A stretch of 64,000 nucleotides of DNA from the NCBI GenBank assembly GCA_002269645.1, contig NIVC01000034.1, forward strand, positions 186,001 through 250,000, in the 5' to 3' direction. Both the position numbers and the translations under genes were made by a program. This document shows positions 15,195 to 64,000 of the stretch, piece by piece. The notes beneath the pieces are model-generated. The model ran no database searches. It was not told where the DNA came from and saw nothing but the letters and a program-made list of their open reading frames with translations. This DNA is from Macrostomum lignano. Its lineage: Eukaryota. Position 1 is the first letter of the stretch, and each line of letters starts with the position of its first letter.

Positions 15195-23461
<8,267 letters not shown>

Positions 23462-28562: not shown

Positions 28563-28844
28563 GTGACACCTTAGTAAAAAAGTCCATTCTAATCTTTAAA
28601 AAGTTGTATCCTTGGGCCTAGCTAAAATATCCCTATCAGTCACTTGATAGTAAATAATGTTAGTAAAAAATCGCACCAAGTTCTAACTGAAATCTACGCA
28701 CACAGCAACACACTATAAAAATGTTCAAATGCAAAAAAAAATTATCAAAGAAAAGATCATGCTTCAAAAAAGTACACTATACATTATACACTACACAAAA
28801 TTATACACAAAAGTACACTATACTATACACTATACTTTTTTCTA

Positions 28845-29112
28845 GACACTATATTTCTATCTAGACTGTCTGTCTGTCTAGACACTAGACACTATATTTC
28901 TATCTAGACTGTCTGTCTGTCTATAGACACTAGACACTATTTTTCTATCTAGACTGTCTGTCTGTCTATAGACACTAGACACTATTTTTCTATCTAGACT
29001 GTCTGTCTGTCTATAGACACTAGACACTATTTTTCTATCTAGACTGTCTGTCTGTCTATAGACACTAGACACTATTTTTCTATCTAGACTGTCTGTCTGT
29101 CTAGACACTATA
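28845..29112. repeat. 45-bp tandem repeat, about 6 copies
   Basis: Repeated CTAGACACTATTTTTCTATCTAGACTGTCTGTCTGTCTATAGACA. Confidence 0.92.
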
Positions 29113-30385: not shown

Positions 30386-30393
30386 TATAAATA
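30386..30393 (+). promoter_or_regulatory. Candidate TATA box of the WSC/F-lectin/VWA gene
   Basis: TATAAATA about 110 bp upstream of the signal-peptide ATG at 30496. Confidence 0.45.
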
Positions 30394-30495: not shown

Positions 30496-30553
30496 ATGGC
30501 GTGCAAAGGCTGGCTATTGCTGGCTGCGTGCCTTCTGCATGTGCTGTCTCAAG
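30496..30553 (+). CDS. Signal-peptide exon (MACKGWLLLAACLLHVLSQ)
   Basis: AAAATGG start context, hydrophobic core, phase-1 donor AAG|GTGAGT at 30554 that joins in frame to the WSC exon at 31070. Confidence 0.8.
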
Positions 30554-33500
30554 GTGAGTGACCTCCGCCAGCACTGAAAGGCCTATGTAGCAGCATTATT
30601 CAAGCTAGTTAACATCCAATTATTTGTTTGTTACTTCTCTTGTGTATTGATATAATACGTAATATTCCGTAGAATCACACTGTCGTCTATGACCATTGCA
30701 TCATAATTGCTTCTGATGTCTATGGCAGCGTTAACTTGAGAAACACAGGGCAACAAGCCAGCTGAGAACCAACAGCGGTTCTCCTTTACCTCTAGCTTTA
30801 CCCGCTTTCTTTCCATAGCAATCGCTAGAACTGACAGTAAATTGCCAATTAACAACATGAGCATTTTGCTTCTTCATCAATTGGTTACTCTACTCGCGAG
30901 TGCTGCAAGTGAAACCTCATAGTGTCCATGCAGTAGCATAACCCAAATTAATCGGCAATTTTCGGCACAAAAGACACATAAACGAGTTCAAACGAGAATG
31001 CATTATACAATCAACCAATTATCCTAATACCTAAACGCAATTCACTAACATTACTACATTCCTATGCAGCGCATTCCTACCGCTACATCGGGTGCTTTGT
31101 GGACAAAGGCAAACGGGATCTGCCGGTACTGGGCGGAACTGGACACATGTACGCGGGTAAGTGCGACCGGCTCTGCCGCAAAAGGAACTACCGCTACTTC
31201 GGTCTGCAGTACTCCAAAGAGTGCTGGTGCGGCAACAGCTACGGCAAGTACGGAGCGCGTCGGTCCAGTGAGTGCCGGATGCGCTGCAGCGGCAGCCGAG
31301 GCTCTTACTGCGGCTCAAGCTGGCGCAACAGCATCTACGCGACCACCAAGCCAAGTGAGTCAGGGCTGAATGGCAAACCAGCGGTCCCGTTCAGTCTGTT
31401 GTGCTCCTTTACGGTTCTCCTTTACCTCTAGCTTTACCCGCTTTCTTTCCATAGCAATCGCTAGAACTGACAGTAAATTGCCAATTAACAACATGAGCAT
31501 TTTGCTTCTTCATCAATTGGTTACTCTACTCGCGAGTGCTGCAAGTGAAACCTCATAGTGTCCATGCAGTAGCATAACCCAAATTAATCGGCAATTTTCG
31601 GCACAAAAGACACATAAACGAGTTCAAACGAGAATGCATTATACAATCAACCAATTATCCTAATACCTAAACGCAATTCACTAACATTACTACATTCCTA
31701 TGCAGCGCATTCCTACCGCTACATCGGGTGCTTTGTGGACAAAGGCAAACGGGATCTGCCGGTACTGGGCGGAACTGGACACATGTACGCGGGTAAGTGC
31801 GACCGGCTCTGCCGCAAAAGGAACTACCGCTACTTCGGTCTGCAGTACTCCAAAGAGTGCTGGTGCGGCAACAGCTACGGCAAGTACGGAGCGCGTCGGT
31901 CCAGTGAGTGCCGGATGCGCTGCAGCGGCAGCCGAGGCTCTTACTGCGGCTCAAGCTGGCGCAACAGCATCTACGCGACCACCAAGCCAAGTGAGTCAGG
32001 GCTGAATGGCAAACCAGCGGTCCCGTTCAGTCTGTTGTGCTCCTTTACGGTTCTCCTTTACCTCTAGCTTTACCCGCTTTCTTTCCATAGCAATCGCTAG
32101 AACTGACAGTAAATTGCCAATTAACAACATGAGCATTTTGCTTCTTCATCAATTGGTTACTCTACTCGCGAGTGCTGCAAGTGAAACCTCATAGTGTCCA
32201 TGCAGTAGCATAACCCAAATTAATCGGCAATTTTCGGCACAAAAGACACATAAACGAGTTCAAACGAGAATGCATTATACAATCAACCAATTATCCTAAT
32301 ACCTAAACGCAATTCACTAACATTACTACATTCCTATGCAGCGCATTCCTACCGCTACATCGGGTGCTTTGTGGACAAAGGCAAACGGGATCTGCCGGTA
32401 CTGGGCGGAACTGGACACATGTACGCGGGTAAGTGCGACCGGCTCTGCCGCAAAAGGAACTACCGCTACTTCGGTCTGCAGTACTCCAAAGAGTGCTGGT
32501 GCGGCAACAGCTACGGCAAGTACGGAGCGCGTCGGTCCAGTGAGTGCCGGATGCGCTGCAGCGGCAGCCGAGGCTCTTACTGCGGCTCAAGCTGGCGCAA
32601 CAGCATCTACGCGACCACCAAGCCAAGTGAGTCAGGGCTGAATGGCAAACCAGCGGTCCCGTTCAGTCTGTTGTGCTCCTTTACGGTTCTCCTTTACCTC
32701 TAGCTTTACCCGCTTTCTTTCCATAGCAATCGCTAGAACTGACAGTAAATTGCCAATTAACAACATGAGCATTTTGCTTCTTCATCAATTGGTTACTCTA
32801 CTCGCGAGTGCTGCAAGTGAAACCTCATAGTGTCCATGCAGTAGCATAACCCAAATTAATCGGCAATTTTCGGCACAAAAGACACATAAACGAGTTCAAA
32901 CGAGAATGCATTATACAATCAACCAATTATCCTAATACCTAAACGCAATTCACTAACATTACTACATTCCTATGCAGCGCATTCCTACCGCTACATCGGG
33001 TGCTTTGTGGACAAAGGCAAACGGGATCTGCCGGTACTGGGCGGAACTGGACACATGTACGCGGGTAAGTGCGACCGGCTCTGCCGCAAAAGGAACTACC
33101 GCTACTTCGGTCTGCAGTACTCCAAAGAGTGCTGGTGCGGCAACAGCTACGGCAAGTACGGAGCGCGTCGGTCCAGTGAGTGCCGGATGCGCTGCAGCGG
33201 CAGCCGAGGCTCTTACTGCGGCTCAAGCTGGCGCAACAGCATCTACGCGACCACCAAGCCAAGTGAGTCAGGGCTGAATGGCAAACCAGCGGTCCCGTTC
33301 AGTCTGTTGTGCTCCTTTACGGTTCTCCTTTACCTCTAGCTTTACCCGCTTTCTTTCCATAGCAATCGCTAGAACTGACAGTAAATTGCCAATTAACAAC
33401 ATGAGCATTTTGCTTCTTCATCAATTGGTTACTCTACTCGCGAGTGCTGCAAGTGAAACCTCATAGTGTCCATGCAGTAGCATAACCCAAATTAATCGGC

Positions 33501-36500
33501 AATTTTCGGCACAAAAGACACATAAACGAGTTCAAACGAGAATGCATTATACAATCAACCAATTATCCTAATACCTAAACGCAATTCACTAACATTACTA
33601 CATTCCTATGCAGCGCATTCCTACCGCTACATCGGGTGCTTTGTGGACAAAGGCAAACGGGATCTGCCGGTACTGGGCGGAACTGGACACATGTACGCGG
33701 GTAAGTGCGACCGGCTCTGCCGCAAAAGGAACTACCGCTACTTCGGTCTGCAGTACTCCAAAGAGTGCTGGTGCGGCAACAGCTACGGCAAGTACGGAGC
33801 GCGTCGGTCCAGTGAGTGCCGGATGCGCTGCAGCGGCAGCCGAGGCTCTTACTGCGGCTCAAGCTGGCGCAACAGCATCTACGCGACCACCAAGCCAAGT
33901 GAGTCAGGGCTGAATGGCAAACCAGCGGTCCCGTTCAGTCTGTTGTGCTCCTTTACGGTTCTCCTTTACCTCTAGCTTTACCCGCTTTCTTTCCATAGCA
34001 ATCGCTAGAACTGACAGTAAATTGCCAATTAACAACATGAGCATTTTGCTTCTTCATCAATTGGTTACTCTACTCGCGAGTGCTGCAAGTGAAACCTCAT
34101 AGTGTCCATGCAGTAGCATAACCCAAATTAATCGGCAATTTTCGGCACAAAAGACACATAAACGAGTTCAAACGAGAATGCATTATACAATCAACCAATT
34201 ATCCTAATACCTAAACGCAATTCACTAACATTACTACATTCCTATGCAGCGCATTCCTACCGCTACATCGGGTGCTTTGTGGACAAAGGCAAACGGGATC
34301 TGCCGGTACTGGGCGGAACTGGACACATGTACGCGGGTAAGTGCGACCGGCTCTGCCGCAAAAGGAACTACCGCTACTTCGGTCTGCAGTACTCCAAAGA
34401 GTGCTGGTGCGGCAACAGCTACGGCAAGTACGGAGCGCGTCGGTCCAGTGAGTGCCGGATGCGCTGCAGCGGCAGCCGAGGCTCTTACTGCGGCTCAAGC
34501 TGGCGCAACAGCATCTACGCGACCACCAAGCCAAGTGAGTCAGGGCTGAATGGCAAACCAGCGGTCCCGTTCAGTCTGTTGTGCTCCTTTACGGTTCTCC
34601 TTTACCTCTAGCTTTACCCGCTTTCTTTCCATAGCAATCGCTAGAACTGACAGTAAATTGCCAATTAACAACATGAGCATTTTGCTTCTTCATCAATTGG
34701 TTACTCTACTCGCGAGTGCTGCAAGTGAAACCTCATAGTGTCCATGCAGTAGCATAACCCAAATTAATCGGCAATTTTCGGCACAAAAGACACATAAACG
34801 AGTTCAAACGAGAATGCATTATACAATCAACCAATTATCCTAATACCTAAACGCAATTCACTAACATTACTACATTCCTATGCAGCGCATTCCTACCGCT
34901 ACATCGGGTGCTTTGTGGACAAAGGCAAACGGGATCTGCCGGTACTGGGCGGAACTGGACACATGTACGCGGGTAAGTGCGACCGGCTCTGCCGCAAAAG
35001 GAACTACCGCTACTTCGGTCTGCAGTACTCCAAAGAGTGCTGGTGCGGCAACAGCTACGGCAAGTACGGAGCGCGTCGGTCCAGTGAGTGCCGGATGCGC
35101 TGCAGCGGCAGCCGAGGCTCTTACTGCGGCTCAAGCTGGCGCAACAGCATCTACGCGACCACCAAGCCAAGTGAGTCAGGGCTGAATGGCAAACCAGCGG
35201 TCCCGTTCAGTCTGTTGTGCTCCTTTACGGTTCTCCTTTACCTCTAGCTTTACCCGCTTTCTTTCCATAGCAATCGCTAGAACTGACAGTAAATTGCCAA
35301 TTAACAACATGAGCATTTTGCTTCTTCATCAATTGGTTACTCTACTCGCGAGTGCTGCAAGTGAAACCTCATAGTGTCCATGCAGTAGCATAACCCAAAT
35401 TAATCGGCAATTTTCGGCACAAAAGACACATAAACGAGTTCAAACGAGAATGCATTATACAATCAACCAATTATCCTAATACCTAAACGCAATTCACTAA
35501 CATTACTACATTCCTATGCAGCGCATTCCTACCGCTACATCGGGTGCTTTGTGGACAAAGGCAAACGGGATCTGCCGGTACTGGGCGGAACTGGACACAT
35601 GTACGCGGGTAAGTGCGACCGGCTCTGCCGCAAAAGGAACTACCGCTACTTCGGTCTGCAGTACTCCAAAGAGTGCTGGTGCGGCAACAGCTACGGCAAG
35701 TACGGAGCGCGTCGGTCCAGTGAGTGCCGGATGCGCTGCAGCGGCAGCCGAGGCTCTTACTGCGGCTCAAGCTGGCGCAACAGCATCTACGCGACCACCA
35801 AGCCAAGTGAGTCAGGGCTGAATGGCAAACCAGCGGTCCCGTTCAGTCTGTTGTGCTCCTTTACGGTTCTCCTTTACCTCTAGCTTTACCCGCTTTCTTT
35901 CCATAGCAATCGCTAGAACTGACAGTAAATTGCCAATTAACAACATGAGCATTTTGCTTCTTCATCAATTGGTTACTCTACTCGCGAGTGCTGCAAGTGA
36001 AACCTCATAGTGTCCATGCAGTAGCATAACCCAAATTAATCGGCAATTTTCGGCACAAAAGACACATAAACGAGTTCAAACGAGAATGCATTATACAATC
36101 AACCAATTATCCTAATACCTAAACGCAATTCACTAACATTACTACATTCCTATGCAGCGCATTCCTACCGCTACATCGGGTGCTTTGTGGACAAAGGCAA
36201 ACGGGATCTGCCGGTACTGGGCGGAACTGGACACATGTACGCGGGTAAGTGCGACCGGCTCTGCCGCAAAAGGAACTACCGCTACTTCGGTCTGCAGTAC
36301 TCCAAAGAGTGCTGGTGCGGAAACAGCTACGGCAAGTACGGAAAGAGGTCCAAGTCCGAGTGCAGGATGAAATGCTCAGGTAAAAAGTCCACCTTCTGCG
36401 GATCGAGCTGGAGAAACAGCATCTACACCACTGGACTGCCAGCTCGAAGACGACCAAGAGTATGTAAGTGCCACAATGCTTACTGTCTAAACTGAGTAGC

Positions 36501-39500
36501 AAATGAATTCTTCGCTTGGGTATTATTATTTATCGTGCAGTTTAGACGCTATGTATCTGTGAGATGGAGTAGATTGCCTTGAATTAAACTTGCATGCTTT
36601 TTTTACTAACACATTCTTAATTCATTGTACAGCAGCATTAAAAGTCCAAATATTATTTCAATCGAAATTGCACGTGATCCAATGTACACGATTTCAGCGA
36701 GGCTGCCTCTGTCTAGATGCTCGCAGCACTCCGTCGGTTGGAACGGTAAATGCAGTAGAGCCATCGATGGAAACACAAACCAAAACTATGGAAAGAAATC
36801 CTGCACCCACACCCGCACTGCGACCGGCGCCTGGTGGCAGGCGAGGACCAGCAGACGTGCCAGAATCACATCCGTCAGAATCTACAACAGGCGGGACTGT
36901 TGCGCCAACAGACTCAGGAACTTTGTGATCAAGGTCGACGGTCGAGTGTGCGCGTCCTACCGCTCGTCGAGAGCGTTCTCTGTGAGGACATTCAGGTGCA
37001 ACGCAGTTGGTCGCACAGTCCGCATCCAGACGAGGAATCGAGTACCGCTGACTCTGTGCGAAGTACAAGTGTTCGGACGTTATGTAGGACGCACTCCAAA
37101 GCCATCACGAGGTGTGTTTTTGTATTTTTAACTGGGAACGTGAGATTAATTTTGGTTTTACTTGCATCTCTGGTAAACTGTATATTTTGTTGCATGTTCT
37201 TTGTTCAGTTTTTTGTTTAATTGATCACCGAAGCATTTCAAACAAAGCCAATTTATGAAATGCAATTATCATTTTAGCCTGTCCAGCTGGGACGAAGGTG
37301 AAGCGAATCTCACGTCGTACCTGTTCTTGCAAGCCAGCGCCGGAAGAGCGACGGCTCGGTTCTCTCGTCTTCGTCATCGACATAACAGGCAGCATGGGCA
37401 GGGTGATCAACGCCGTTCGGAGGAACATCCGAAAGATTCTCGCTGCAAACAGGCGCTTCAGTAACTACGTTGTCGCTACTTTCGGCGACCCTTATGTGAA
37501 GAACATGAAGAAGACCAAAGACGCTCGACAGGTGATTCGATTTCTCAATCGGCTTCGAGCATCCGGAGGTGGCGACTGTGCGGAGATGGCCATGTCTGGC
37601 GCACTGGACGCCGCAGCAGCTGCTGACCGCAACTCTGTCATGATGCTGTTCACCGACGCCTCGGCCAAGGACGCCCGACTGAAGGGTCGCGTATCGGCCA
37701 GGCTGAGGTCGAAAGGAATCAGGTTGTACACTGTCGCGAGCGGCAACCTTTGTCGGCGAGGCAGCGGACTTTACAAATCGTTAGCGAGAGGCTCAGGTGG
37801 CTACGTGGCGAGCCTGCGCTCCAGCTACTTCAACAAGGCAAGGGTTATATTTCATGACTTCTATTGTATACAGGGGGCTTTCGGCATTGTTATAATGTAA
37901 GGTCAGATGTAAACTAGCGAGGAGAAAATCGGTTATGCTTAATACCGGTACGTTAAACATTCAGCACAAAAAGGTACGTAAGCACGTAGGTACAGAATCT
38001 GAAGGGGTGGACACCTGTCTTTAGTTTGTCGTAGCCAGTCCTGTCTATTTTGTTCGATGGGTTGACCCTTACTGATATTAATAGCAGGAGAAGGGACAAG
38101 GCCTTTTTGTGCATGAGCCGCTAGTTACTGAGGCCGCGTACTAAATCGAGACCGTCTGCGTTTCATCTTTGCTTTGGCCAGTGTTTGTGCTTTTAAAAAA
38201 ACTAATATAGTCCGAAAAATAGAAAAAATTGCTTAGTTTCATATTAGCTAAATTTTCTGAAAGAGCGTGGTTCAGCATGCTTTTTTTCTTTTCAATTGCA
38301 GCAGTGTTTAATGTCTAAAGTGTCTAGTGTGGCAGACTTTTTTGTTATTCTTTTTTAGTTTAAAATACCTGACGACACTGTCTAGGTCATTAAAATGTTG
38401 CAGCCTCGCTGATTTTCACTTTGATTTATCAGTAATCCTTTAATTACGTATTAACCTTCCTCCGTCTTTTTCAGCTGATGGAGTTTGTCAGGCGAGCAGC
38501 CAGTGGAAAAATGAGCTTCAGTGCCTTCCCAGCAAACGCGGCATCGCTAAACAAAGCTCTTCGAGGCCGTAAGCAAGAATTAGTTAATTTACAAAAAATA
38601 TTTGTAGGCTTAGCCTTGAAAACCAATCATCAGGATCTTACTAATACTCTTTGCAGGTTGCCGCTGTCGAAATATCAATCGTCGAATCTGTGTGCGAAAT
38701 GGTGAGAACTGCAAGACCGTTTTGTAAAATATAAATCATTTATTTGAAGCTCCACTGCACCTAATTTTCCGGACAATTCTTAGTGAAATAGATGCATTAA
38801 TTGACTCAAAGAACTAAAGCAACAGGTGGACAACAAACACAAAATCGCGAAAACAAACCCACTAGCGAAATTGCAAGAGTCGCATAATTTTGGTGCAAAA
38901 AAATCCGATTGTGTTTTAACTGGAACCTATAGTAATTTAAAATATGTTCATATCTTTTATTCACTAAGGCTTCCATCTGCGGCAACTCATCCTGCTAGTA
39001 GTTTTCGCAGACTTAGAATTCATTTCACTTCAAAGATCTGTTCTTTATCGCGTGTGTGCTCACCGAAATCTTGTAAATTTTGCAAGCATTGCTTGATAGT
39101 TGCCTCTGTCTTGCGACCTTTCATCACGGACTACTCTACTCGGAAAGGATACTACACAAAAAACAACCTCACATGATACTGCTATACGCATGCGTCTTGC
39201 TCAGCTTATTCTTCTCGGAAAGGATCCTCCCGATTGTAAATAGGCTTCTGCTTGGTATGTCTCGCTCGCGACTTGTCCACAACTACTGGATTGACTGCAA
39301 GAATGTTGATGGGATCTGCTTTGTTCTTGAGCTATTTAGAAGCCTGTTAGAGGATATTAGTTTGCTACACAAGCACTGGGCCCTTGCGAGATGTGAGCCT
39401 TCTACAGAAGCAGCAACTTGTTAGCTCAGTGTGTTTTGTTGCAGCCCAGAAGGTGCAACGACCAGGTGACCAACCTAGGTCGGCAGCAAAATAAACAGCT

Positions 39501-42500
39501 GATGATGGAGTTAGTCAGGCGAAAAAAACATTTAACCACTGTTCTGCATTAGCCGACGCGCCTGCCACCGAATGCCACACTGCCGAGTTTGAAATAACGC
39601 TTAGTGCAGAAGCGAACTGATTTTCCTGCATCATATTAGACAAGTAGACAACGATTGTGAATTGAGCCAAACTGCTACTCACTGGGGCATTAATTCGCCT
39701 TGCTCTCTCCTTCACTTTCTATCTAGTTTCTTTTATTTGCCTCTTCCAGCATTTTTCTTGTAACTTCCTGTATATACTTGTAAATCACACAATCTATACA
39801 ACTAAAGTAAAGTGGCTCTAACAAAGGTTCATTGCTTAATTCCATTCACTTGCATAAACGTTTTAGAAACTGGGAAGCATGACTACCGAAAATTGGAAAC
39901 AAAAAGTGTTTGAGCGACAATCTAAAAAATAGATTTGCTTTTCAAATATAGCAACTATGATCACGTGAAGACAACTGCGTTAAAAAGCTAACCCTTGCTT
40001 CACAATACCAGAATGAAGTAAAAACCAATGCGAATAAAAACGCTAACGACTAGCAGGCAAGAATAATGATAATATTCCAAGAAAACGCGCAAAACACTGT
40101 ATATCACGAATGTCTTGATCATACTGTAAAATGCCCTTAAAAAACTACAAACAAGTGTGTTTCGTGTTTTCCATCTTTCTTCAATCAGTTTAACAAAAAG
40201 CGGTGCCCAATTTTTAAAACAATTCACTGCAGGAGCGCATGCCACATCTAAAACTATTTTCCAATTATTACCAAGATTTCAATGTCTCCTTATGTCTCCC
40301 GTTTCAGCGAGGCTGCCGCTGTCCAGATGCTCGCAGCATTCTATCGCTGCAAGAGGTAAATGCAGAAGAGCTATCGATGGAAACACGAACCAGAACTATG
40401 GAAAGAAATCCTGCACCCACACCCGCACTGCGACCGGCGCCTGGTGGCAGGCGAGGACAAGCAGACGTGCCAGAATCACATCCGTCAGAATCTACAACAG
40501 GCGGGACTGTTGCGCCAACAGACTCAGAAACTTTGTGATCAAGGTCGACGGTCGAGTGTGCGCGTCCTACCGCTCGTCGAGAGCGTTCTCTGTGAGGACG
40601 TTCAGGTGCAACGCAGTTGGTCGCACAGTCCGCATCCAGACGAGGAATCGAGTACCGCTGACTCTGTGCGAAGTGCAAGTGTTCGGACGTTATGCTAAAG
40701 GCCGATCGCGAAGCAGAAGTAAGAACTAAAGAACGCTTTCCTCTTTGTATGACTTTTAATTCGATTAATTGGGTAGACTTTCGTAGACATTTGTCGCCGA
40801 AGTACGAGCTATAATATTTACGTCCTTTAAAACCTTTTAGCTCCGGGAATGCGATTCGTCGGCTGCTACATCGACAAGAAAAAGCGTGACCTACCAGTGA
40901 TGGCCGGCTCCGGCTCGATGAGCATCCCGAAGTGCTACCGACTGTGCAGAGCAAAGAAATACGCCTACTTCGGTGTGCAGTACAGCAAGGAGTGCTGGTG
41001 CGGAAACAGCTACGGCAAGTACGGAAAGAGGTCCAAGTCCGAGTGCAGGATGAAGTGCTCTGGTAAAAAGTCGACCTTCTGCGGATCGAGCTGGAGAAAC
41101 AGCATCTACACCACTGGACTGCCAGCTCGAAGACGACCAAGAGTATGTAAGTGATACAACGCTCACTGTCTAAAACGGAGTAGCAGATGTAATTCTTCGC
41201 TTGGTATCATTATTTGTCATACAGTTTAAGACGCTATGTATTGAGATGGAATTGATTGACTAAAATTAATTATGCGTGCTTTTACTACCAATAGAAAGCC
41301 ATTGTACAGCGGCGTTTAAAGCCGAGAATACACACGTGCTCAAATGTACACAATTTCAGCGAGGCTGCCTCTGTCCAGATGCTCGCAGCACTCCGTCGGT
41401 TGGAACGGTAAATGCAGTAGAGCCATCGATGGAAACACAAACCAAAACTTTGGAAAGAAATCCTGCACCCACACCCGCACTGCGACCGGCGCCTGGTGGC
41501 AGGCGAGGACAAGCAGACGTGCCAGAATCACATCCGTCAGAATCTACAACAGGCGGGACTGTTGCGCCAACAGACTCAGAAACTTTGTGATCAAGGTCGA
41601 CGGTCGAGTGTGCGCGTCCTACCGCTCGTCGAGAGCGTTCTCTGTGAGGACGTTCAGGTGCAACGCAGTTGGTCGCACAGTCCGCATCCAGACGAGGAAT
41701 CGAGTACCGCTGACTCTGTGCGAAGTGCAAGTGTTCGGACGTTATGCTAAAGGCCGATCGCGAAGCAGAAGTAAGAACTAAAGAACGCTTTCCTCTTTGT
41801 ATGACTTTTAATTCGATTAATTGGGTAGACTTTCGTAGACATTTGTCGCCGAAGTACGAGCTATAATATTTACGTCCTTTAAAACCTTTTAGCTCCGGGA
41901 ATGCGATTCGTCGGCTGCTACATCGACAAGAAAAAGCGTGACCTACCAGTGATGGCCGGCTCCGGCTCGATGAGCATCCCGAAGTGCTACCGACTGTGCA
42001 GAGCAAAGAAATACGCCTACTTCGGTGTGCAGTACAGCAAGGAGTGCTGGTGCGGAAACAGCTACGGCAAGTACGGAAAGAGGTCCAAGTCCGAGTGCAG
42101 GATGAAGTGCTCTGGTAAAAAGTCGACCTTCTGCGGATCGAGCTGGAGAAACAGCATCTACACCACTGGACTGCCAGCTCGAAGACGACCAAGAGTATGT
42201 AAGTGATACAACGCTCACTGTCTAAAACGGAGTAGCAGATGTAATTCTTCGCTTGGTATCATTATTTGTCATACAGTTTAAGACGCTATGTATTGAGATG
42301 GAATTGATTGACTAAAATTAATTATGCGTGCTTTTACTACCAATAGAAAGCCATTGTACAGCGGCGTTTAAAGCCGAGAATACACACGTGCTCAAATGTA
42401 CACAATTTCAGCGAGGCTGCCTCTGTCCAGATGCTCGCAGCACTCCGTCGGTTGGAACGGTAAATGCAGTAGAGCCATCGATGGAAACACAAACCAAAAC

Positions 42501-54500: not shown

Positions 54501-57500
54501 GACTCGGCTTATCTTGGCTGCTTCATTGACAACGCAGCCCGCGACCTGCCCAAGGTGGTGAACGCTGGAGTGAAAGCCAACAGCCACTACTGCATCAAGC
54601 TGTGCAAGCGTGCTGGCTACAAGTACGCCGGTTTGCAATACGCCAGTTACTGCACCTGCGGCAATAGCTACGGCTCTCTGGGTCGAGTCAGCAACAAGCA
54701 ATGTAAAATGACGTGCAAGGGCGACAGGCGAGAGAAGTGCGGCGGACCGTGGAGGAACTCCGTCTACAGCACCGGACTCAAGACTAGAAAGGTGTCAAGT
54801 AAGTCTTCTTTTACACAAACTAACATAATGAACTTTTAGATTGTTAATTTTAAATGATCTTTGAGATAAATTTCAATTAATATCGTTGTTTTTAACAGCT
54901 CCGGGACTGAAGTACCTCGGCTGCTTCGTCGACAAAGCCACCAGAGATCTGAGACGCGAAGCTCCAAAAGGCCACATGAGCGTGCCCAAGTGCTACAGGT
55001 TCTGTCGAAAGCACAAGTACAAGTTCTTCGGAGTGCAATATGGCAACCATTGCTTCTGCGGCAATCACTATGGCCGATTCGGAATCAGACCGAACACGGA
55101 GTGCAGGATGCAGTGCAGTGGCGATAAGACTACTTACTGCGGTGCAGGCTGGAGAAACAGTGTGTACGCTACCGGCTTGGAGCTGGCTTCCACAGGTAAA
55201 TATTTAATAAAAAGTCTACCAACACTGAAATTTCAATTTTTACATAATATCAATAAAATATAAAACGGTTTTTATTAAAGTGATGAGTGCTAGACATTTG
55301 AGCACGTGCTGACATCCATTGGATTCTGAATAATATTCAAAGCAACACCACCTTTCAGGAGCTGGAGTTCGCAAGCTCGGCTGCTACGTCGACACAGCTA
55401 AGCGAGACCTGCCCCACCTGTACGCTGCTGGACACAAGACTAACAAAGCCTTCTGCTGGAGGTACTGTAAAGGCAAGGGTTACAAGTACTTTGGACTGCA
55501 GTTCGGCAACCACTGTACATGCGGAAACACGTACGGTCGGTACGGTAGAGCAAAGGCGTCGTCATGCTCAGCAGTGTGCAAAGGCGACCGACGAAGAAAG
55601 TGCGGCGGCACTTGGAGAAACGAGATTTTTACAACCGGACTGAGGTCCAAGAATGCTAAAAGTGAGTTATTGTTAGCTTTCCTACGTTTTAGCATGAGCT
55701 GCTTAATGTAGGCTCAACTTTTATTTTAACGTTCTTGGGCGTCCTCTGACTGTAGCTCAGCTTTTAGAACACAGCACTACTTTACAAAAGCCTGGGACAA
55801 AGAACATAGACAAATTAAACCCTCGCACTCCTCTTAGGTAAATTTACAGGTTCATATCGGTTTTCCATTCGATACAGAAAAAGAACATAAGAGTGTTGAG
55901 TCTCAGTTCTCTCAATAAAAGAATATTGTTGTCAAAGTTAGTATCACTGCAGAGGCTTCATCCAACGGAATTTGCAGGTAAGCATTGGTGAAGTCGATGA
56001 CGGCAAAAACGTTGCCCCGTCCAACTGGCTTAGGACGTCCTCGTTGCTTGGTGTGGTAGAGACCATGTCGTTTAACCAATTATTTACTGTCACTTTATAA
56101 TCCCCACGCAAACAAATCTTTCTATTCGGGTTTCTTACAGTCACGAATGGAGTAGACCATTTGCTCTGATCCACGGGCTTTAAGATCTTCTCCGCCACCA
56201 ACCGTTCCAGTTCCAGCTTAACAGCATCACACATGCCGTAGCTGTCTGGTATTGGTCGTTGTTTAAAAAAACAATGGTGTAGCACCATCCTTTAACGTGA
56301 GGTGCGCTCAAAATTAAGCAACTTAAAAGATGTTTAGATGAGGTTCCAGTGCGTGCATCCACTCGAGGCCATTAAAGATACTGGGAGCGTTTAGATTGTC
56401 TACCATGAATATCGGGAGGCTGCCGTCTTGCCTTGAAATTGCACGTTCACAATCGACTGTCCACATATCGGAACAACTCTTCCTTGGTAATCGTTGAAAT
56501 TTCTGTCCGGTATTAGACTTCCGGTTTTCTCTGTTAGACCATCGAACAGTTTTCTAGAAATTAGCGAGGCATCTGGATTTGCCACGGTATTGAAAACCGT
56601 GTTGAAATCGGTCCCGTTAATGCGCAACTTTCTGTAGATTCTCTGACTGTCCCTTGAAATAAGAACACTTGATCTCCATTGTCCCCTAGCTGCTTATCGA
56701 CATCGTTCCGAACTTCCCCATGCATAACATAAGTCTGATAGAAAATGACCCGCTTGTAGGCTTACATCTTTGCGAAGATGTCTTGGGGTTTAGTGCTTTA
56801 CAGACGGCTTTGAGATGTCCCACTTTTCTACAATATCCACACTTGAGCAGCTTGTCTCGACATTCCCTCTTCATGTGTACTTGCTTTCCACTGCAGAAGC
56901 AAGATATCTGTTTTCTTGCTTCTCAACGGTAGGCTCTTTCAGGCTGTTTTCATTGCCCAATTCCGGTGACGGGGTCGATTTCCCCCTGACTGGCGCATCT
57001 GTAATAGGCCTGAGTCCGCCATGTCCTCACCTCTTTACACAGATGCGCACGCTGTTGCAACAGCAGTGACCTTTTCCAGAGTTATTCCCGCGAGTTTCTC
57101 GGCCAATAGCTTGCGTAGAATATCTTATCTTTGTTCGAAAGTTCAAATATAAACTGGTCGCGAAGACGGTCCTTGACGTCGTTGGAATCGCACTCGTCGG
57201 CCAGTTGATTCAGTCTAGGACTGTTCGACAAGGTATCCTCGTTGGGCTCCTGCCCTGTCCTGCGAAATACGTATCGGTAGGCGATTACAGATTTCAGTGA
57301 TTTTATCTTGTCACTCAGCAAGGTCTTCATGTCATCGTAGGACTTCTTCTCAGTATCGTCTGGCACGGCTGCATCTGCGAGAAGGTTACACATGCGCTTG
57401 CCAATAAGCGCTAGAAATGCGTCTTTCTGCTTTTCCTCCTTGAAGTCGTGAAATTTGCAGTGAATTTCGACTCTTCAAATCTACCTATTCGAATCTTCAC

Positions 57501-60500
57501 CATCTTCTAGTGTGTCCAGTGGGGAAAGCCTCGTCGCCATTGTTAGCTTTCTTCTTACGTTGTAGCATGAGCTGCCAATGTATTCTCAATCTTTATTTTC
57601 ACGCTCAGCTTATAAATCACAACACTAAATTACAAATACGCTCGTATCTAAGGCATATAGAAAAACTAAACCCTCGCAGTTGTTATTCAATACTTTATCA
57701 TACATCGAACAAATTTAATGCTGCTTTGTTAAAAACTTGCAAAATGTGAAATTACACGGTGATGTACTTGTCAAACTCTCGTAAAAAAACAAACAGATGA
57801 TAGCTTTGAACTATATCGCTCTCTTTTAGCACCAGGAATGCTACATCTCGGCTGCTTCGTCGACTCTAAAGCTCGCGACCTACCCAAATTAGCTGGCAAG
57901 GGCCGCATGACTGTCGGAAAGTGCTACAACTTGTGCAGAAAGCTCAAGTACAGATTCTTTGGAGTGCAGTACGCAAGTCAGTGCTGGTGCGGTAACCACT
58001 ACGGACGGTACGGTCTTCGCGACAAGAACGAGTGCCGCATGCAGTGCAGCGGCGACAAGACCACTTACTGCGGTGCAGGCTGGAGAAACGACATCTTCAC
58101 AACTGGTCTTTCGGCCAGGCCAAAAGGTAAGATTACTTAGTGTTGCAATGCCTATAATTTATATCGATTACTGAAACGAGCTATCATTTACGACAGCAAC
58201 TATGATTTTTGTCCACAGACTCGGCTTATCTTGGCTGCTTCATTGACAACGCAGCCCGCGACCTGCCCAAGGTGGTGAACGCTGGAGTGAAAGCCAACAG
58301 CCACTACTGCATCAAGCTGTGCAAGCGTGCTGGCTACAAGTACGCCGGTTTGCAATACGCCAGTTACTGCACCTGCGGCAATAGCTACGGCTCTCTGGGT
58401 CGAGTCAGCAACAAGCAATGTAAAATGACGTGCAAGGGCGACAGGCGAGAGAAGTGCGGCGGACCGTGGAGGAACTCCGTCTACAGCACCGGACTCAAGA
58501 CTAGAAAGGTGTCAAGTAAGTCTTCTTTTACACAAACTAACATAATGAACTTTTAGATTGTTAATTTTAAATGATCTTTGAGATAAATTTCAATTAATAT
58601 CGTTGTTTTTAACAGCTCCGGGACTGAAGTACCTCGGCTGCTTCGTCGACAAAGCCACCAGAGATCTGAGACGCGAAGCTCCAAAAGGCCACATGAGCGT
58701 GCCCAAGTGCTACAGGTTCTGTCGAAAGCACAAGTACAAGTTCTTCGGAGTGCAATATGGCAACCATTGCTTCTGCGGCAATCACTATGGCCGATTCGGA
58801 ATCAGACCGAACACGAGTGCAGATGCAGTGCAGCGGCGATAAGACTACTTACTGCGGTGCAGGCTGGAGAAACAGTGTGTACGCTACCGGCTTGGAGCTG
58901 GCTACCACTGGTAAATATTTTTAGACGATAAAAGTATTAATATTGACTTTTCGATTTGTATATATTACCTTCAAACATGAAAAGAGCCAGCCGTCTTTTT
59001 AAGTAGTGAGTGCCTAAAAATTGAGCACTAGCTTGCAATCAAAAATATATTTGAGAAATGCAGAAATGCTACGTGCTGACATCCATTGGATTCTGAATAA
59101 TATTCAAAGCAACACCACCTTTCAGGAGCTGGAGTTCGCAAGCTCGGCTGCTACGTCGACAAAGCTAAACGAGACTTGCCCCACCTGTACGCTGCTGGAC
59201 ACAAGACTAACAAAGCCTTCTGCTGGAGGTACTGTAAAGGCAAGGGTTACAAGTACTTTGGACTGCAGTTCGGCAACCACTGTACATGCGGAAACACGTA
59301 CGGTCGATACGGTAAAGCAAAGGCGTCGTCATGCTCAGCAGTGTGCAAAGGCGACCGACGAAGAAAGTGCGGCGGCACTTGGAGAAACGAGATTTTCACA
59401 ACCGGACTGAGGTCCAAGAAGGCTAAAAGTGAGTTATTATTAATACTTTATCATGCATCGAAAAAAATTATTGCTGCTTTGTTAAAAACTTGCAAAATGT
59501 GAAATTACACGGTGATGTACTTGTCAAACTCTCGTAAAAAAACAAACAGATGAAAGCTTTGAACTATATCGCTCTCTTTTAGCACCAGGAATGCTACATC
59601 TCGGCTGCTTCGTCGACTCTAAAGCTCGCGACCTACCCAAATTGGCTGGCAAGGGCCGCATGACTGTCGGAAAGTGCTACAACTTGTGCAGAAAGCTCAA
59701 GTACAGATTCTTTGGAGTGCAGTACGCAAGTCAGTGCTGGTGCGGTAACCACTACGGACGGTACGGTCTTCGCGACAAGAACGAGTGCCGCATGCAGTGC
59801 AGCGGCGACAAGACCACTTACTGCGGTGCAGGCTGGAGAAACGACATCTTCACAACTGGTCTTTCGGCCAGGCCAAAAGGTAAGATTACTTAGTGTTGCA
59901 ATGCCTATAATTTATATCGATTACTGAAACGAGCTATCATTTACGACAGCAACTATGATTTTTGTCCACAGACTCGGCTTATCTTGGCTGCTTCATTGAC
60001 AACGCAGCCCGCGACCTGCCCAAGGTGGTGAACGCTGGAGTGAAAGCCAACAGCCACTACTGCATCAAGCTGTGCAAGCGTGCTGGCTACAAGTACGCCG
60101 GTTTGCAATACGCCAGTTACTGCACCTGCGGCAATAGCTACGGCTCTCTGGGTCGAGTCAGCAACAAGCAATGTAAAATGACGTGCAAGGGCGACAGGCG
60201 AGAGAAGTGCGGCGGACCGTGGAGGAACTCCGTCTACAGCACCGGACTCAAGACCAGAAAAGCTTCGAGTAAGTGATTGAGTAAAAGAAAGCTCGAAAAA
60301 CACTTTTTTCACGATATATTGGTACTATATAATTTTCATTTCATTTTTTTGACAATGTTTAGCGCCGGGAATGAAATACCTCGGCTGCTTTGTCGATAGT
60401 TCGAAACGAGATCTGAGACGCGAAGCTCCAAGAGGCCACATGAGCGTGCCCAAGTGCTACAGGTTCTGTCGAAAGCACAAGTACAAGTTTTTCGGAGTGC

Positions 60501-63500
60501 AATATTCCAACCATTGCTTCTGCGGCAATCACTATGGCCGATTCGGAATCAGACCGAACACCGAGTGCAGAATGCAGTGCAGCGGCGACAAGACCACTTA
60601 CTGCGGAGGAGGCTGGAGAAACAATGTTTACACGACAGGCTTGGAGGTGGCTACAATTGGTAAATGTGCATTTTTATTGAGTTTTTTAAGCCTCTGGACA
60701 TCGCATATAAAATGAGATTAAACACAGAAAATTATCTTCAACGCATTCATTTTTTATAGCCAAGGGTGTCAGACGTCTTGGATGTTTTGTTGACAATGCC
60801 AAGCGAGACCTGCCTTTAGTACACAATGCCGGTCATAAGGCAAGCAAGCCATACTGCTGGAAATTCTGCAAGAGCCGAGGCTACGTTTACTTTGGTCTGC
60901 AGAATGGAAATCATTGCACGTGCGGCAATAACTACGGAGCTTTCGGTCGAGCCAAGAAGAGCTCGTGTCGCAAACCCTGTCGGGGAGACAAGAGGTCGAA
61001 ATGCGGTGGAGCCTACAGAAACGAAGTGTTCACAACCGGAATTGAGCTTGAGCGGCCATCGGGTGAGATTACTACAGATCGGGTGGTTTAATACAAACGA
61101 TCGTTGGTTAAAATTCAATTTTTTCGGAACCTTTCACCCACTCCAGCTCCGGGCATGAAGCACATGGGCTGCTTTGTCGATTCTCGCAAACGCGACCTGC
61201 CTAAGCTTGCTGCCACTGGCGACATGTCTGTCCTGAAGTGCCGCTTAAAGTGCAAACGACTCGGCTATAGGTACTTTGGTGTACAATTTGCCAAGCAGTG
61301 CTGGTGCGGCAACAGCTACGGTAAGCACGGCAAGAGAAGCCAGATCGAGTGCAGGATGCAGTGCACCGGCGACAAGGCCAACTACTGCGGAAATAGCTGG
61401 AGAAACGACATCTACTCTACGGGGATTGAGCTGGAAGCGTCCAGTGAGTATTCTTTCCACTGCCCATTTTTCGAAAGTTTTTCCGTGTCGTCTTTAAAGT
61501 AATTCTTTCAGCTTGCAAGTCCTGTAATACAGTAAAGCAACGTTTAGAATGCATTTTTGATAAATAAAAGATTCATGCAGGGGCATCGCCACCGGGGGGG
61601 ACAAGGGGGGCATGCCCCCCAGTAAAAGATAAGGGGGGGGGGGTCATGCCAATGCTTTGTCCCCCCAACCTTGTATGGAAATCAATAATTTTGCTGCAGG
61701 GTGAGAAAGCACGGTGCCAAAATAAGTGCCTGCGGCGCCAAAATAAGTGCCTACGGCGCTAAAATGAGTGCCTGCGGCGCTAAAATGAGTGCCTGCGGCG
61801 CTAAAATGAGTGCCTGCGGCGCTAAAATTAGTGCCTGCGGCGCCAAAATTAGTGCCTACGGCGCTAAAATGAGTGCCTGCGGCGCTAAAATGAGTGCCTG
61901 CGGCGCTAAAATTAGTGCCTGCGGCGCCAAAATTAGTGCCTGCGGCGCTAAAATGAGTCTCTGCGGTACCAAAATGAGTGCCTGCGGCGCTAAAATGAGT
62001 GCCTGCGGCGCTAAAAAGGAGCGCCGGCAACACCGACTCAGAAAATAATGTACACGTAGGAATTTAGTCATGTAGGTCGTACATGTAGATGTATCAATAA
62101 AATTCTTGGCTTTGTCTCCCCCCCCACCATAAAATCCATGGCGACGCCATTGGATTCAATTATCCGTCTGTCTAATATACGTTTGTATGAATGGAAGTGA
62201 GGAGAGATACATACGATATAACATTTATTGTACAGTGTATATACTTGTAACACACTTACGAGCAGCTCTTATAGAATTTGAAGCATAACCGGTTAGCATT
62301 GTAGGGAATTAGGGAACTTATGGAATTTTATAGTTTGGAATAAAGATAGATAAACGAGAATAGTTAAGTAGCGTCGATAGTTTATGCATCAAATCTGGCA
62401 TCCTATCCGTTCTCAGCTTGCCGGCTCGGCACCAAGGAGAAGTTCGTGCCCTACCGCACCTGCTCTTGCAAGCCGGCGCCAGACCATCGCAGCCTCGGCT
62501 CCCTGGTGTTCGTCATTGACACTACGGGCAGCATGGGCAGAGTCATCAAGTCCGTGAAGAACAACATCCGCAAAATCATCGCTGCCAATAAGCGATTCGA
62601 CGACTTCGTCGTTGCCACATTCGGCGATCCCTACAAGAAGAAGCTGATGAAGACAACCAGCGCATCGAAGATCTATCGGTTCCTCAACAAGCTGAAGGCC
62701 AGAGGAGGTGGCGACTGTCCCGAGTTCGCGATGTCGGGCGCTCTGGACGCTGCCGAGGCTGCCGAGCCGAACTCCGTCATGATTCTGTTCACGGACGCCT
62801 CAGCCAAGGACAGGCGCAAGATGGGCGCCGTGGAGGCCAAGCTGAAGGCCAAGAGAATCCGATTCTTCACGGTAGCCAGCGGCAGGCAGTGCGGCACGAA
62901 CGGAAAGAACTTCGCTAAGTTGGCCAAAGTCACCTACGGACAGTTTTCTAGGCTTCACTCCAAAGTCAGCAATAAGGTAAAATTGATTTTCTATGAGCTT
63001 GTAGAGAGACCGCAGGGTTGATTTCAGATTATGTAGTCAAATAATTACTTAATGAAACTCTCCGCCCAGGTCATGGAGCTCATCAGACGAGGTGTCCGAG
63101 GCGATTTAAGCTTCAGTGCCTTCCCCTCAAGCCGTGGCGGTCTGACCAGAGTGCTGAAAGGAAGTGAGTACTCTTTTGACTTATCAATATACCAGGTAGC
63201 AGACATTTTTAACGACTTGAAAAATTTCTCAAGCGGTGTTTATCGAAATGGGTAATCGAAGTTTGACTCACAAGTAGACAGTCACATGTACCTTACCTAC
63301 TTCGGAAGCCAGCCTTTTCAAGGAGCTAAAGTCAAGATGATAAAGTATCATTGAGTAAGATTATAGATACTGAAGCGCTAAATAAAACATCAATTTTGGC
63401 TGCAAACAACTTAAAATTTTCAGAATGCCCTTGTCGAACTGTTACTCGTCGAATTTGTGTGAAGCCGCATCCAGGTAAGAATGTTTTTTGTTTGTTTAAT

Positions 63501-64000
63501 TTAGATAGCTTAACGATAAAATTTAATTTTTTATACGAGATAATCATTGCTTCATGTGACTTGACGTAAATTGACATCGCTGGCAAATGGCTAGTTTTTA
63601 AAGTACACTGACAAATATGGAAGTCGTACGGCGGCTGAACGATTGTTTAATGCACGCTCATTTAAGTACCCATTTGTCAGCAATATAGAAGGACGTTGTT
63701 ACCGCACAGCTACTACTATAAGTAGTTGTATCAAACTTTTACATACATCGCCCATTCGATCATTAAAGGATTCCTCGGCTGTTACCTGGACGACCCGGAG
63801 TATCCGGACTTCACCGTCGCCATGGTGTCCAACCGCATGACTGTGTGGAAGTGCAATAAAATCTGCAAGGCCAAGAAGTTTTCCTACTTCGGCGTCAAGA
63901 ACGGCAAAATCTGCGGCTGCGGCAATCAGTATGGAAACAGCGGCGACACCGCCAATGCCAACTGCAACGTGGCTTGCGGCGGCAACCCGGGCGAGAAGTG
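30496..64000 (+). CDS. Giant secreted multidomain protein: signal peptide, about 39 WSC, 10 F-type lectin (FTP) and 3 VWA+linker modules; 3' end beyond the window
   Basis: A phase-compatible exon chain runs from the signal exon to the window end. WSC signature: GC(F/Y)xD...C...C......F(G)xQ...C.CG...Y...C...C.G....CG..WRN.(I/V)Y. F-lectin signature: AIDGN...SCTHT...RxDCC..R. VWA signature: FVIDxTGSM...GGGDC.E. A few 1-nt exonic deletions occur near 47.3-48.0 kb and 58.8 kb. Confidence 0.8.
30776..36320 (+). repeat. 636-bp tandem array (WSC exon plus intron), about 8.7 apparently identical copies
   Basis: Identical ORFs recur every 636 bp. The 285-nt exons start at 31070, 31706, 32342, 32978, 33614, 34250, 34886 and 35522, and a ninth hybrid exon spans 36158-36463. 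Confidence 0.97.
36698..37111 (+). CDS. F-type lectin (fucolectin/FTP) exon, module 1
   Basis: AIDGNTNQNYGKKSCTHT...NRRDCCANRL carries an intact H-x26-R-x-D-x4-R fucose-binding motif. Phase 1-1. Confidence 0.9.
37287..38701 (+). CDS. VWA domain exon (37287-37837) plus linker exons (38475-38568, 38657-38701), module 1
   Basis: LVFVIDITGSMGRVI, GGGDCAEMAMSG and FTDASAKD are hemicentin/VWA7-type VWA motifs. The linker LMEFVRR...RCRCRNINRRICVR is conserved in all three modules. Confidence 0.85.
40308..48080 (+). repeat. 1052-bp tandem array of F-lectin exon plus WSC exon, about 7.4 copies
   Basis: F-lectin exons start at 40308, 41360, 42412, 43464, 44516, 45568, 46620 and 47669. WSC exons start at 40841, 41893, 42945, 43997, 45049, 46101 and 47153. 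Confidence 0.97.
48256..49320 (+). CDS. VWA exon (48256-48806) plus linker exons (49102-49195, 49276-49320), module 2
   Basis: The VWA exon is nearly identical to module 1. Linker exon lengths (94 and 45 nt) are the same as in module 1. Confidence 0.85.
49408..51806 (+). CDS. Six diverged WSC exons
   Basis: Phase 1-1 exons at 49408-49707, 49809-50108, 50350-50646, 50733-51032, 51123-51422 and 51510-51806, each with the 8-Cys WSC pattern. Confidence 0.88.
51890..52300 (+). CDS. Diverged F-type lectin exon
   Basis: AIDGNTNQHFFKHSCTHT...NRQDCCAKRL. 411 nt, phase 1-1. Confidence 0.88.
52519..55661 (+). CDS. Seven WSC exons
   Basis: Exons at 52519-52821, 53297-53593, 53699-54001, 54113-54409, 54502-54798, 54899-55195 and 55359-55661, all with lengths divisible by 3 and phase 1-1. 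Confidence 0.88.
55671..57678 (-). mobile_element. Degraded, internally deleted Ty3/Gypsy LTR retrotransposon in an intron
   Basis: LTRs at 55671-55827 and 57541-57678 (minus strand TGCGAGGG...GCTAACA). PBS-like TGGCGACGAGG lies next to the 5' LTR and a PPT (AAGAGGAG) next to the 3' LTR. Fragments of gag (RLRDQFIFEL), zinc knuckle (CGYCRKVGHLKAVC), protease and RT N-terminus (WSTPFVTV...GDYKVTVN). 5-bp TSD GTTAT/GTTGT. Confidence 0.88.
57830..61443 (+). CDS. Nine WSC exons, including 1753-bp-period repeats of the 54113-55661 block
   Basis: Exons at 57830-58126, 58219-58515, 58616-58910 (2 nt short), 59126-59428, 59583-59879, 59972-60268, 60363-60659, 60760-61062 and 61147-61443. Confidence 0.86.
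61578..62152 (+). mobile_element. hAT-like MITE carrying a 21-bp minisatellite (intronic)
   Basis: Ends CAGGGGCATCGCC...GGCGACGCCATTG. The flanks GATTCATG and GATTCAAT look like a decayed 8-bp TSD. Internal (AAAATGAGTGCCTGCGGCGCT)n at about 61715-62015. Confidence 0.8.
62417..63474 (+). CDS. VWA exon (62417-62976) plus linker exons (63070-63163, 63424-63474), module 3 (diverged)
   Basis: LVFVIDTTGSMGRVI, GGGDCPEFAMSG and FTDASAKD. Linker VMELIRR...KCPCRTVTRRICVKPHP. Canonical GT-AG sites. Confidence 0.87.
63769..64000 (+). CDS. WSC exon, truncated by the window end
   Basis: GFLGCYLDDPEYPDF...CNKICKAKKFSYFGVKNGKICGCGNQYG...CNVACGGNPGEK. Not in the supplied ORF track. Confidence 0.8.

Follow-up and report, generated by a model that had tools for sequence, protein, structure and literature searches.

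The window analysed here, a stretch of 64,000 nucleotides identical in sequence to positions 186001-250000 of contig NIVC01000034.1 in the Macrostomum lignano assembly Mlig_3_7, holds a real and very large gene, Mlig000935, whose first half has been deposited in GenBank under the label 'hypothetical'. With modest confidence, we read its plus strand from 30.5 kb onwards as one gene, with a TATA promoter, a signal peptide and at least 58 domain exons, whose product would be a multivalent glycan-binding scaffold of ~4,000-6,000 amino acids (aa) secreted body-wide; the role as a cationic glycan-binding scaffold is deduced from domain content and composition. An initial annotation had proposed a giant secreted protein composed of WSC, F-type lectin (FTP) and VWA domains. 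Such a secreted-type WSC/F-type lectin/VWA_4 mosaic is supported by the putative signal peptide and by Pfam, and the domain order that had been proposed was reproduced exactly by the 59-exon model described below. The closest database matches are M. lignano proteins, at 97% identity.

The model was built by hand, splice sites being located for each open frame on the plus strand from 30.5 kb to the end of the window. Short open frames follow one another there in a regular series, with one protein domain per exon. When 59 exons are spliced from the ATG at 30496 and five 1-nt deletions are bridged, 5,937 codons are obtained without a stop, in the order SP-(WSC)9-FTP-VWA-a-b-(FTP-WSC)7-FTP-VWA-a-b-(WSC)6-FTP-(WSC)16-VWA-a-b-WSC, where SP is the signal peptide and a and b are small exons. 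The earlier figure of more than 5,000 aa within the window is reached in this way, only with the deletions bridged and with a repeat number that may depend on the assembly. The model contains 39 WSC domains (the last one partial at the window end), 10 FTP and 3 VWA domains; in its second half, Pfam counts 23 WSC, 2 VWA_4 and 1 FTP. Almost all domain exons are in phase 1-1, with AG acceptors and GT donors. The VWA exons end in phase 0 and are followed by exon a (31 aa, phase 0 to 1) and exon b (15-17 aa, phase 1 to 1), which are conserved across all three VWA modules. The parts of the gene, all on the plus strand, are the following.

30386..30393, plus: TATA box TATAAATA; the 5' end annotated for the Mlig000935g1 mRNA (30424) lies 31-38 nt downstream
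30496..30553, plus: exon 1, with the ATG and a putative signal peptide MACKGWLLLAACLLHVLSQ (judged by eye), a GTGAGT donor and a phase 1 end
31070..36463, plus: nine WSC exons (Pfam) of 285 nt each, the last of 306 nt, in a 636-bp tandem array
36698..37111, plus: FTP exon 1 (F-type lectin)
37278..38701, plus: VWA module 1 (VWA_4 exon 37278-37837 with a GC donor, exon a 38475-38568, exon b 38657-38701)
40308..47457, plus: seven FTP-WSC exon pairs, in a 1052-bp tandem array
47153-47457, plus: last WSC exon of the 1052-bp array, with a 1-nt deletion after 47268
47669..48080, plus: FTP exon 9, with 1-nt deletions after 47887 and 48040
48247..49320, plus: VWA module 2 (VWA_4 exon 48247-48806 with a GC donor, exon a 49102-49195, exon b 49276-49320)
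49408..51806, plus: six divergent WSC exons
51890..52300, plus: FTP exon 10, a divergent copy with intact motifs
52519..61443, plus: sixteen WSC exons, which include a ~1.75-kb higher-order repeat of four exons
58616-58910, plus: WSC exon carrying two 1-nt deletions (after 58814 and 58821)
62417..63474, plus: VWA module 3 (VWA_4 exon 62417-62976 with a GT donor, exon a 63070-63163, exon b 63424-63474)
63769..64000, plus: family-specific C-terminal WSC exon, truncated where the window ends

Several of these parts are matched in other proteins of the species. The N-terminus encoded by exon 1 recurs in the GenBank protein PAA93064.1 and in the paralogues P0010 and P0068, while the junctions of VWA module 1 are the same in the RNA-seq-based GenBank model and those of module 3 agree with the paralogue P0009. 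The last exon shares 84-86% identity with the C-terminal WSC of P0010 and P0005; ~13 codons are missing from it, which are expected to be CGGSTNNSVFEVK-like from the paralogues, as these end ~13 residues further.

In Pfam, the WSC exons correspond to PF01822 (E 1e-15 to 1e-20; 39 matches in all above the gathering score), the FTP exons to PF22633/PF00754 (F5/8-type-C/NedA-like, above cut-offs) and the VWA exons to PF25106 VWA_4 (E ~1e-35 per domain). F-type lectins are defined by a fucose motif, H-x26-R-x-D-x4-R/K, and a Ca motif, h2DGx (PMC12221842). All ten FTP domains keep H-x26-R-x-D-x4-R, as had been noticed at the outset, together with the Ca motif AIDGN, and they match solved F-type lectins, namely MsaFBP32 (3CQO, E = 1.7e-27) as well as Sm-hPAF, SpX-1 and AAA (1K12) (E <= 4e-13). 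By sequence they belong to the F-type lectin domain (FTLD) family and are predicted fucose binders. The closest solved WSC structure is the WSC domain of Kremen1 (E = 5e-9).

The three VWA domains carry the motifs DITGS, DITGS and DTTGS, with the invariant T126/D127 present in the alignment. A sequence search of the module against the PDB returned no match at E <= 0.1. AlphaFold modeling of VWA1 with exons a and b (pLDDT 84.8, pTM 0.80) produced a VWA core, for which Foldseek retrieved integrin beta-I, ITIH1 and ANTXR domains. In this model, residues 6-16 form an N-terminal strand, exon a supplies helices and exon b a C-terminal strand (222-232); the two terminal strands probably pair with each other. 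Exons a and b had initially been described as linkers. They do lie between modules, but each such 'linker' consists of two conserved small exons that, according to the AlphaFold model, complete the VWA module and are part of it. The label 'hemicentin-type' likewise held in part: the domains fall in the subfamily of Hemicentin-1 and VWA7 (PF25106) with a DxTGS-type start of the metal-ion-dependent adhesion site (MIDAS), and their nearest non-Macrostomum matches are VWA7-like. Hemicentin-1, however, has a single N-terminal VWA instead of three internal ones, and Pfam found no Ig arrays, G2F, EGF or fibulin modules and no VWA7 accessory domains in the whole model, so that no other hemicentin feature is present. 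The VWA_4 module is also lineage-expanded in other secreted proteins of M. lignano (P0107, P0016, P0021), in four tandem copies or with an LCCL domain; P0107 (PAA86075.1, Mlig022224g1, 4,112 aa) combines two VWA_4 copies with VWD.

As encoded in this assembly, the mature product would have a mass of ~669 kDa and a pI of 10.25. Its composition is 12.4% Arg and 8.1% Lys (20.5% Arg+Lys), 7.0% Cys and 4.6% Asp+Glu, and it contains one N-x-S/T sequon.

The deposited model of the locus, PAA93064.1 (BOX15_Mlig000935g1, 'hypothetical protein, partial'), comprises 2,822 aa and represents the first part of the gene. The Mlig_3_7 annotation was obtained by genome-guided StringTie/TACO assembly of RNA-seq data, with open reading frames (ORFs) called by TransDecoder. 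The junctions of PAA93064.1 are those of the hand-built model from the signal peptide via VWA1 and exons a and b into the FTP-WSC array, and since it crosses the VWA1 junction, this first junction is transcript-supported. It omits one WSC exon among the first nine, and it terminates in an out-of-frame read-through produced by the deletion at 47268, indicating that its truncation is an ORF-calling artefact and does not reflect a mapped 3' end. Public protein sets lack ~3,100 aa of our model. The public annotation would thus be corrected for roughly half of a ~6,000-aa gene, absent since a consensus error truncates the called ORF.

That the unannotated half is coding is indicated by its sequence, which bears the mark of purifying selection: Ka/Ks among its paralogous WSC exons is 0.04-0.2, at Ks values of up to 0.8. 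The eight cysteines are present in 38 of the 38 complete WSC copies, despite divergence down to 37% identity. A second copy of the whole locus lies at NIVC01003074.1:18954-46433; it is collinear and ~98.7% identical, including the upstream 10 kb and an intronic insert resembling a transposable element (TE). Between 48.3 and 57.9 kb, this copy differs from the window by no substitution over 5,038 exonic bases, as against seven over 4,583 non-exonic ones (Fisher p = 0.0055), small numbers whose direction fits with purifying selection.

A single gene is the best reading of the two halves. Phases are consistent along the chain of exons, the acceptors are AG and the donors GT or GC, and the frame is free of stops. 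Between exon b of VWA module 2 (b2) and the next WSC exon there are just 87 bp, too few for a separate promoter and signal-peptide exon; neither an ATG nor a signal-peptide exon was found in this gap, and the phases are compatible across it. Similarly, no AATAAA or ATTAAA was found between the VWA2 exon and exon a2. The small, complete paralogue PAA55829.1 (P0010; SP-WSC-FTP-FTP-WSC, 475 aa) matches the first exons of the window at 84% and its last exon at 84-86%, which argues that the two ends belong together; the locus has a single N-terminus of the family, at 30.5 kb, and a single C-terminus, at 63.8 kb. The second genomic copy also retains this order of modules, with a smaller number of units. 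Finally, an entry of 13,818 nt is listed for Mlig000935.g7 by Brand et al. 2020 (PMC7336406, Table S8). It amounts to 4,606 codons if it is a coding sequence, and the lengths examined in that table are all multiples of three. Entries for Mlig gene identifiers were found in PMC7336406 only, and none in the supplements of PMC5730564 and PMC12896417 or in the main texts of the paper collection. The initial annotation had likewise assumed a single gene, and the junctions, the 87-bp gap, the paralogue ends and the 13,818-nt entry bear it out as the best reading.

The locus might alternatively hold two or more genes or transcripts, one with the layout SP-(WSC)9-FTP-VWA-(FTP-WSC)7-FTP-VWA ending near 48-49 kb, and a Mlig000253-like one, (WSC)n-FTP-(WSC)n-VWA-WSC, from 49.4 kb. 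The GenBank model does end at 47.36 kb with nothing annotated directly downstream, the paralogue family Mlig000253 ((WSC)n-VWA-a-b-WSC) is similar to the second half, at 50-62% identity, and M. lignano has spliced-leader trans-splicing and polycistronic precursors. We nevertheless consider such a division improbable, as the annotated end coincides with the read-through of the 47268 deletion, the third block starts in mid-domain phase and without a signal peptide, and the 87-bp gap, the lack of polyadenylation motifs and the long entry for the cluster, all described above, speak for continuity.

A number of observations weigh against a single gene of the proposed size and role. The GenBank model stops at 47.36 kb and the interval 47.4-57.4 kb is devoid of annotation. 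The second half (~3,100 aa) has no deposited protein above 62% identity in a collection of 5.8 billion sequences (word-indexed searches and local BLAST), and in the collections searched the junction from b2 to the next WSC exon is covered by no transcript or protein above this identity. Mlig000935.g7 may be the window locus or a near-identical copy. VWA1 and VWA2 require the rarer GC donors (AAG/GCAAGG and AAG/GCACGG, the slash marking the exon end), the donor of VWA3 at the homologous codon being AAG/GTAAAA. The frame requires five 1-nt corrections, after 47268, 47887, 48040, 58814 and 58821. The arrays are near-perfect and differ in copy number, which makes the exact length uncertain, and the stated size may be inflated. 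Lastly, sugar binding is not a property of every WSC domain.

We regard PacBio consensus errors, and not genuine lesions, as the most likely origin of the five frameshifts. The second copy of the locus has the missing G at 47268, 47887 and 48040 and carries a different 1-nt deletion, at the equivalent of window position 47751; three of the five window deletions turn GG into G; and Mlig_3_7 was assembled with Canu from PacBio continuous long reads (CLR) and polished with Pilon, the pattern and the provenance together pointing to consensus error. Short reads are not uniquely placeable in such perfect repeats. The GenBank model of the second copy, PAA53524.1 (1,143 aa), is itself truncated by a 1-nt deletion of its own. 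If the frameshifts were real, the window copy might be a decaying duplicate in the neopolyploid DV1 genome, and only another copy would encode the full protein. Five exonic frameshifting deletions would be in keeping with decay, as would the 180 Mb of blocks at least 95% identical in the assembly, the existence of the second locus copy, and the same frame jumps in P0003, a model based on the ML2 assembly. However, ML2 and Mlig_3_7 go back to one and the same set of PacBio reads, so P0003 does not provide independent evidence. The correct base in the second copy at three window sites, with a different deletion elsewhere, is the pattern of random consensus error; moreover, every lesion is a 1-nt deletion, the frame is free of stops, the splice sites are all preserved, and exonic substitutions relative to the second copy amount to zero over 5 kb. 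We therefore give little credence to decay and retain consensus error as the explanation of the frame jumps.

The 636-bp and 1052-bp arrays were measured by script, Tandem Repeats Finder being limited to periods <=500. The seven interior units of the 636-bp array show no differences, and the 1052-bp units have two differing positions over 5.8 kb. In the second genomic copy, the order is the same with two N-terminal WSC exons where the window has nine, and two FTP-WSC units where it has seven. The exon count presumably grew via tandem duplication of exon cassettes. An antisense ORF of 278 aa lies in every 1052-bp unit (40304-47266, minus strand) and spans exons and the intervening intron; it repeats owing to the identity of the units, and nothing suggests that it is coding.

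Expression data are available from a published re-analysis of positional RNA-seq (PMC7336406), based on unreplicated samples in which reads of near-identical copies are pooled. Counts for Mlig000935 were 1,878 in the head only, 1,495 in head plus testis, 1,602 in head plus testis plus ovary and 2,195 in the whole worm, and its positional class is Non-Specific. The fact that fragments of the head alone already show full expression speaks against the tail adhesive glands, the prostate and the shell or cement glands, and favours a cell type found along the body. Of the roles that had been suggested at first, those in tail adhesion and in the egg capsule or shell gland are thereby argued against. 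The same study reports that Mlig000935.g7 is ~4.6-fold lower (log2 fold change ~-2.2) in worms kept in octets than in isolated (padj 1.6e-5) or paired ones (padj 9.5e-4) (PMC7336406 Tables S9/S10).

Two known groups of M. lignano proteins were considered as candidates and rejected. The adhesive proteins Mlig-ap1 and Mlig-ap2 (PMC6410801) are also very large, secreted, Cys-rich and repetitive; they have domains that bind carbohydrates and proteins, and Mlig-ap1 carries a strong positive charge. In contrast to the present gene, they contain KR repeats, C-type lectin, vWD/C8/TIL, EGF, TSP1 and LDLa domains and are expressed in the tail adhesive glands; identity with them is ruled out by domain content, and the cluster falls in the Non-Specific positional class. 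Among the seminal-fluid candidates of M. lignano with prostate-limited expression, many carry WSC, on transcripts of 0.3-1.4 kb. Membership of this group is ruled out by size (13.8 kb vs ~1 kb) and by expression that is not tail-specific.

A mechanism can be proposed from these properties. Terminal fucose would be the ligand of the F-type lectin domains; further glycans, probably anionic or glucan-type, may be bound by the WSC domains and through the positive charge; and the VWA modules may form metal-dependent protein contacts. The scaffold as a whole would then cross-link or coat glycan-rich extracellular material along the entire body, such as surface mucus, rhabdite secretion, the glycocalyx or the gut lumen. 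The same single gene could instead encode a soluble pattern-recognition lectin, serving innate immune recognition and agglutination rather than cross-linking of a structural matrix or mucus. In fish and invertebrates, tandem F-type lectins serve as opsonins and agglutinins (reviews including PMC12221842), and the ten fucose sites, intact by motif, as well as the body-wide expression would suit this role. On the other hand, a mass of ~670 kDa, 39 WSC domains, VWA modules and an extreme positive charge are easier to reconcile with a matrix or polymer than with a circulating opsonin, and the 4.6-fold drop in octets is not what simple exposure to pathogens at higher density would predict. An immune function thus appears unlikely, and we keep the structural scaffold as the working interpretation. 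M. lignano is a transgenic and RNA interference (RNAi) model for bioadhesion, mucus and sexual selection, so this putative ten-site fucose binder, strongly cationic, highly expressed and body-wide, is a candidate component of the surface or mucus matrix that can be tested there.

A more speculative reading, to which we assign a very low probability, is that the locus generates diversity, yielding multivalent glycan binders that vary between individuals or conditions in a manner comparable to oyster bindin. This idea draws on the sequence-perfect cassette arrays, which vary by unequal crossing-over (9 vs 2 and 7 vs 2 units), on the phase 1-1 layout of almost every exon, which would let any subset drop out without a change of frame (one is missing from the annotated transcript), and on the response of expression to social group size. 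If it were true, variable binders might serve in surface recognition between worms or between worm and biofilm.

FTP-VWA-a-b-FTP-WSC served as the query of an exhaustive HMMER search for relatives among 1.84 billion representatives, and 4,631 proteins were returned at E <= 1e-10. Among the best 150 of these and the earlier matches, combinations of WSC with FTP occur in amphioxus, hemichordate, oyster and protists, while WSC or FTP is combined with this VWA in M. lignano only. No characterised protein and no described family with this layout was found among the best 150 of the 4,631 matches, in agreement with the impression of an unfamiliar architecture given by the initial annotation; the novelty is lessened by the first 2,822 aa being already deposited and by the existence in amphioxus of a giant mosaic of WSC and F-type lectin domains.

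The closest relatives are the M. lignano paralogues Mlig000253 (PAA70473.1, PAA74529.1), with the layout (WSC)n-VWA_4-a-b-WSC, and Mlig029288g1, whose product is PAA55829.1. They share the signal peptide and first WSC, the VWA-a-b unit with identical junctions and the atypical C-terminal WSC. They differ in being far shorter (475 to >=1,315 aa) and in never combining all three domain types, and they are uncharacterised hypothetical proteins. The amphioxus protein XP_078580859.1 (P0143, LOC144864360, Branchiostoma hybrid) reaches 5,602 aa, with a signal peptide, ~34 WSC and five F-type lectin domains, in part in FTP-WSC alternation. Unlike the M. lignano gene, this likewise uncharacterised protein has Kringles, no VWA and divergent WSC domains, with 32% identity over the matched stretches. 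Its architecture was probably assembled independently, which suggests a recurrent design.

The gene belongs with the mosaic tandem F-type lectins, and is in part already deposited. With MsaFBP32/MsFTL1, Xenopus PXN-FBPL (five FTLDs) and oyster bindin, it has in common the FTLD fold, the fucose and Ca motifs and tandem multivalency, and the repeat number of oyster bindin varies too. Those proteins have one to five FTLDs, compared with ten here, and their partner domains are pentraxin, CTLD, CCP and FA58C. WSC and von Willebrand partner domains are not mentioned in the F-type lectin reviews (including PMC12221842). WSC and VWA_4 would therefore be additions to the partners of this lectin domain, at a multiplicity unreported in those reviews.

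Two introns of the gene contain further repetitive sequence. The intron at 55662-57829 harbors a TE-like insert of ~2 kb (55700-57800) that is common to the second genomic copy. Three minus-strand ORFs within it (55944-56288, 56400-56627 and 57082-57393) resemble pol/gag of long terminal repeat (LTR) retrotransposons by eye only; Pfam gave no match for them, and the label is one of appearance. The 974-bp intron before VWA3 holds a 21-bp minisatellite (61712-62016, 14.5 copies), which is open in plus-strand frame 3 as (CGAKMSA)n. It was considered as an exon and set aside as intronic, the equivalent introns of modules 1 and 2 being without it.

Upstream of the gene, the window contains three unrelated features.

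354-2306, minus: ORF with a Med31/SOH1 match
7806-8447, plus: ORF with a COMMD HN-domain
~17.7-20.6 kb, plus: GC-rich annotated gene with a 994-aa product, ending near 20615

A 45-bp tandem repeat (28842-29110; 6.1 copies, 97% matches) lies ~1.3 kb upstream of the TATA box of Mlig000935.

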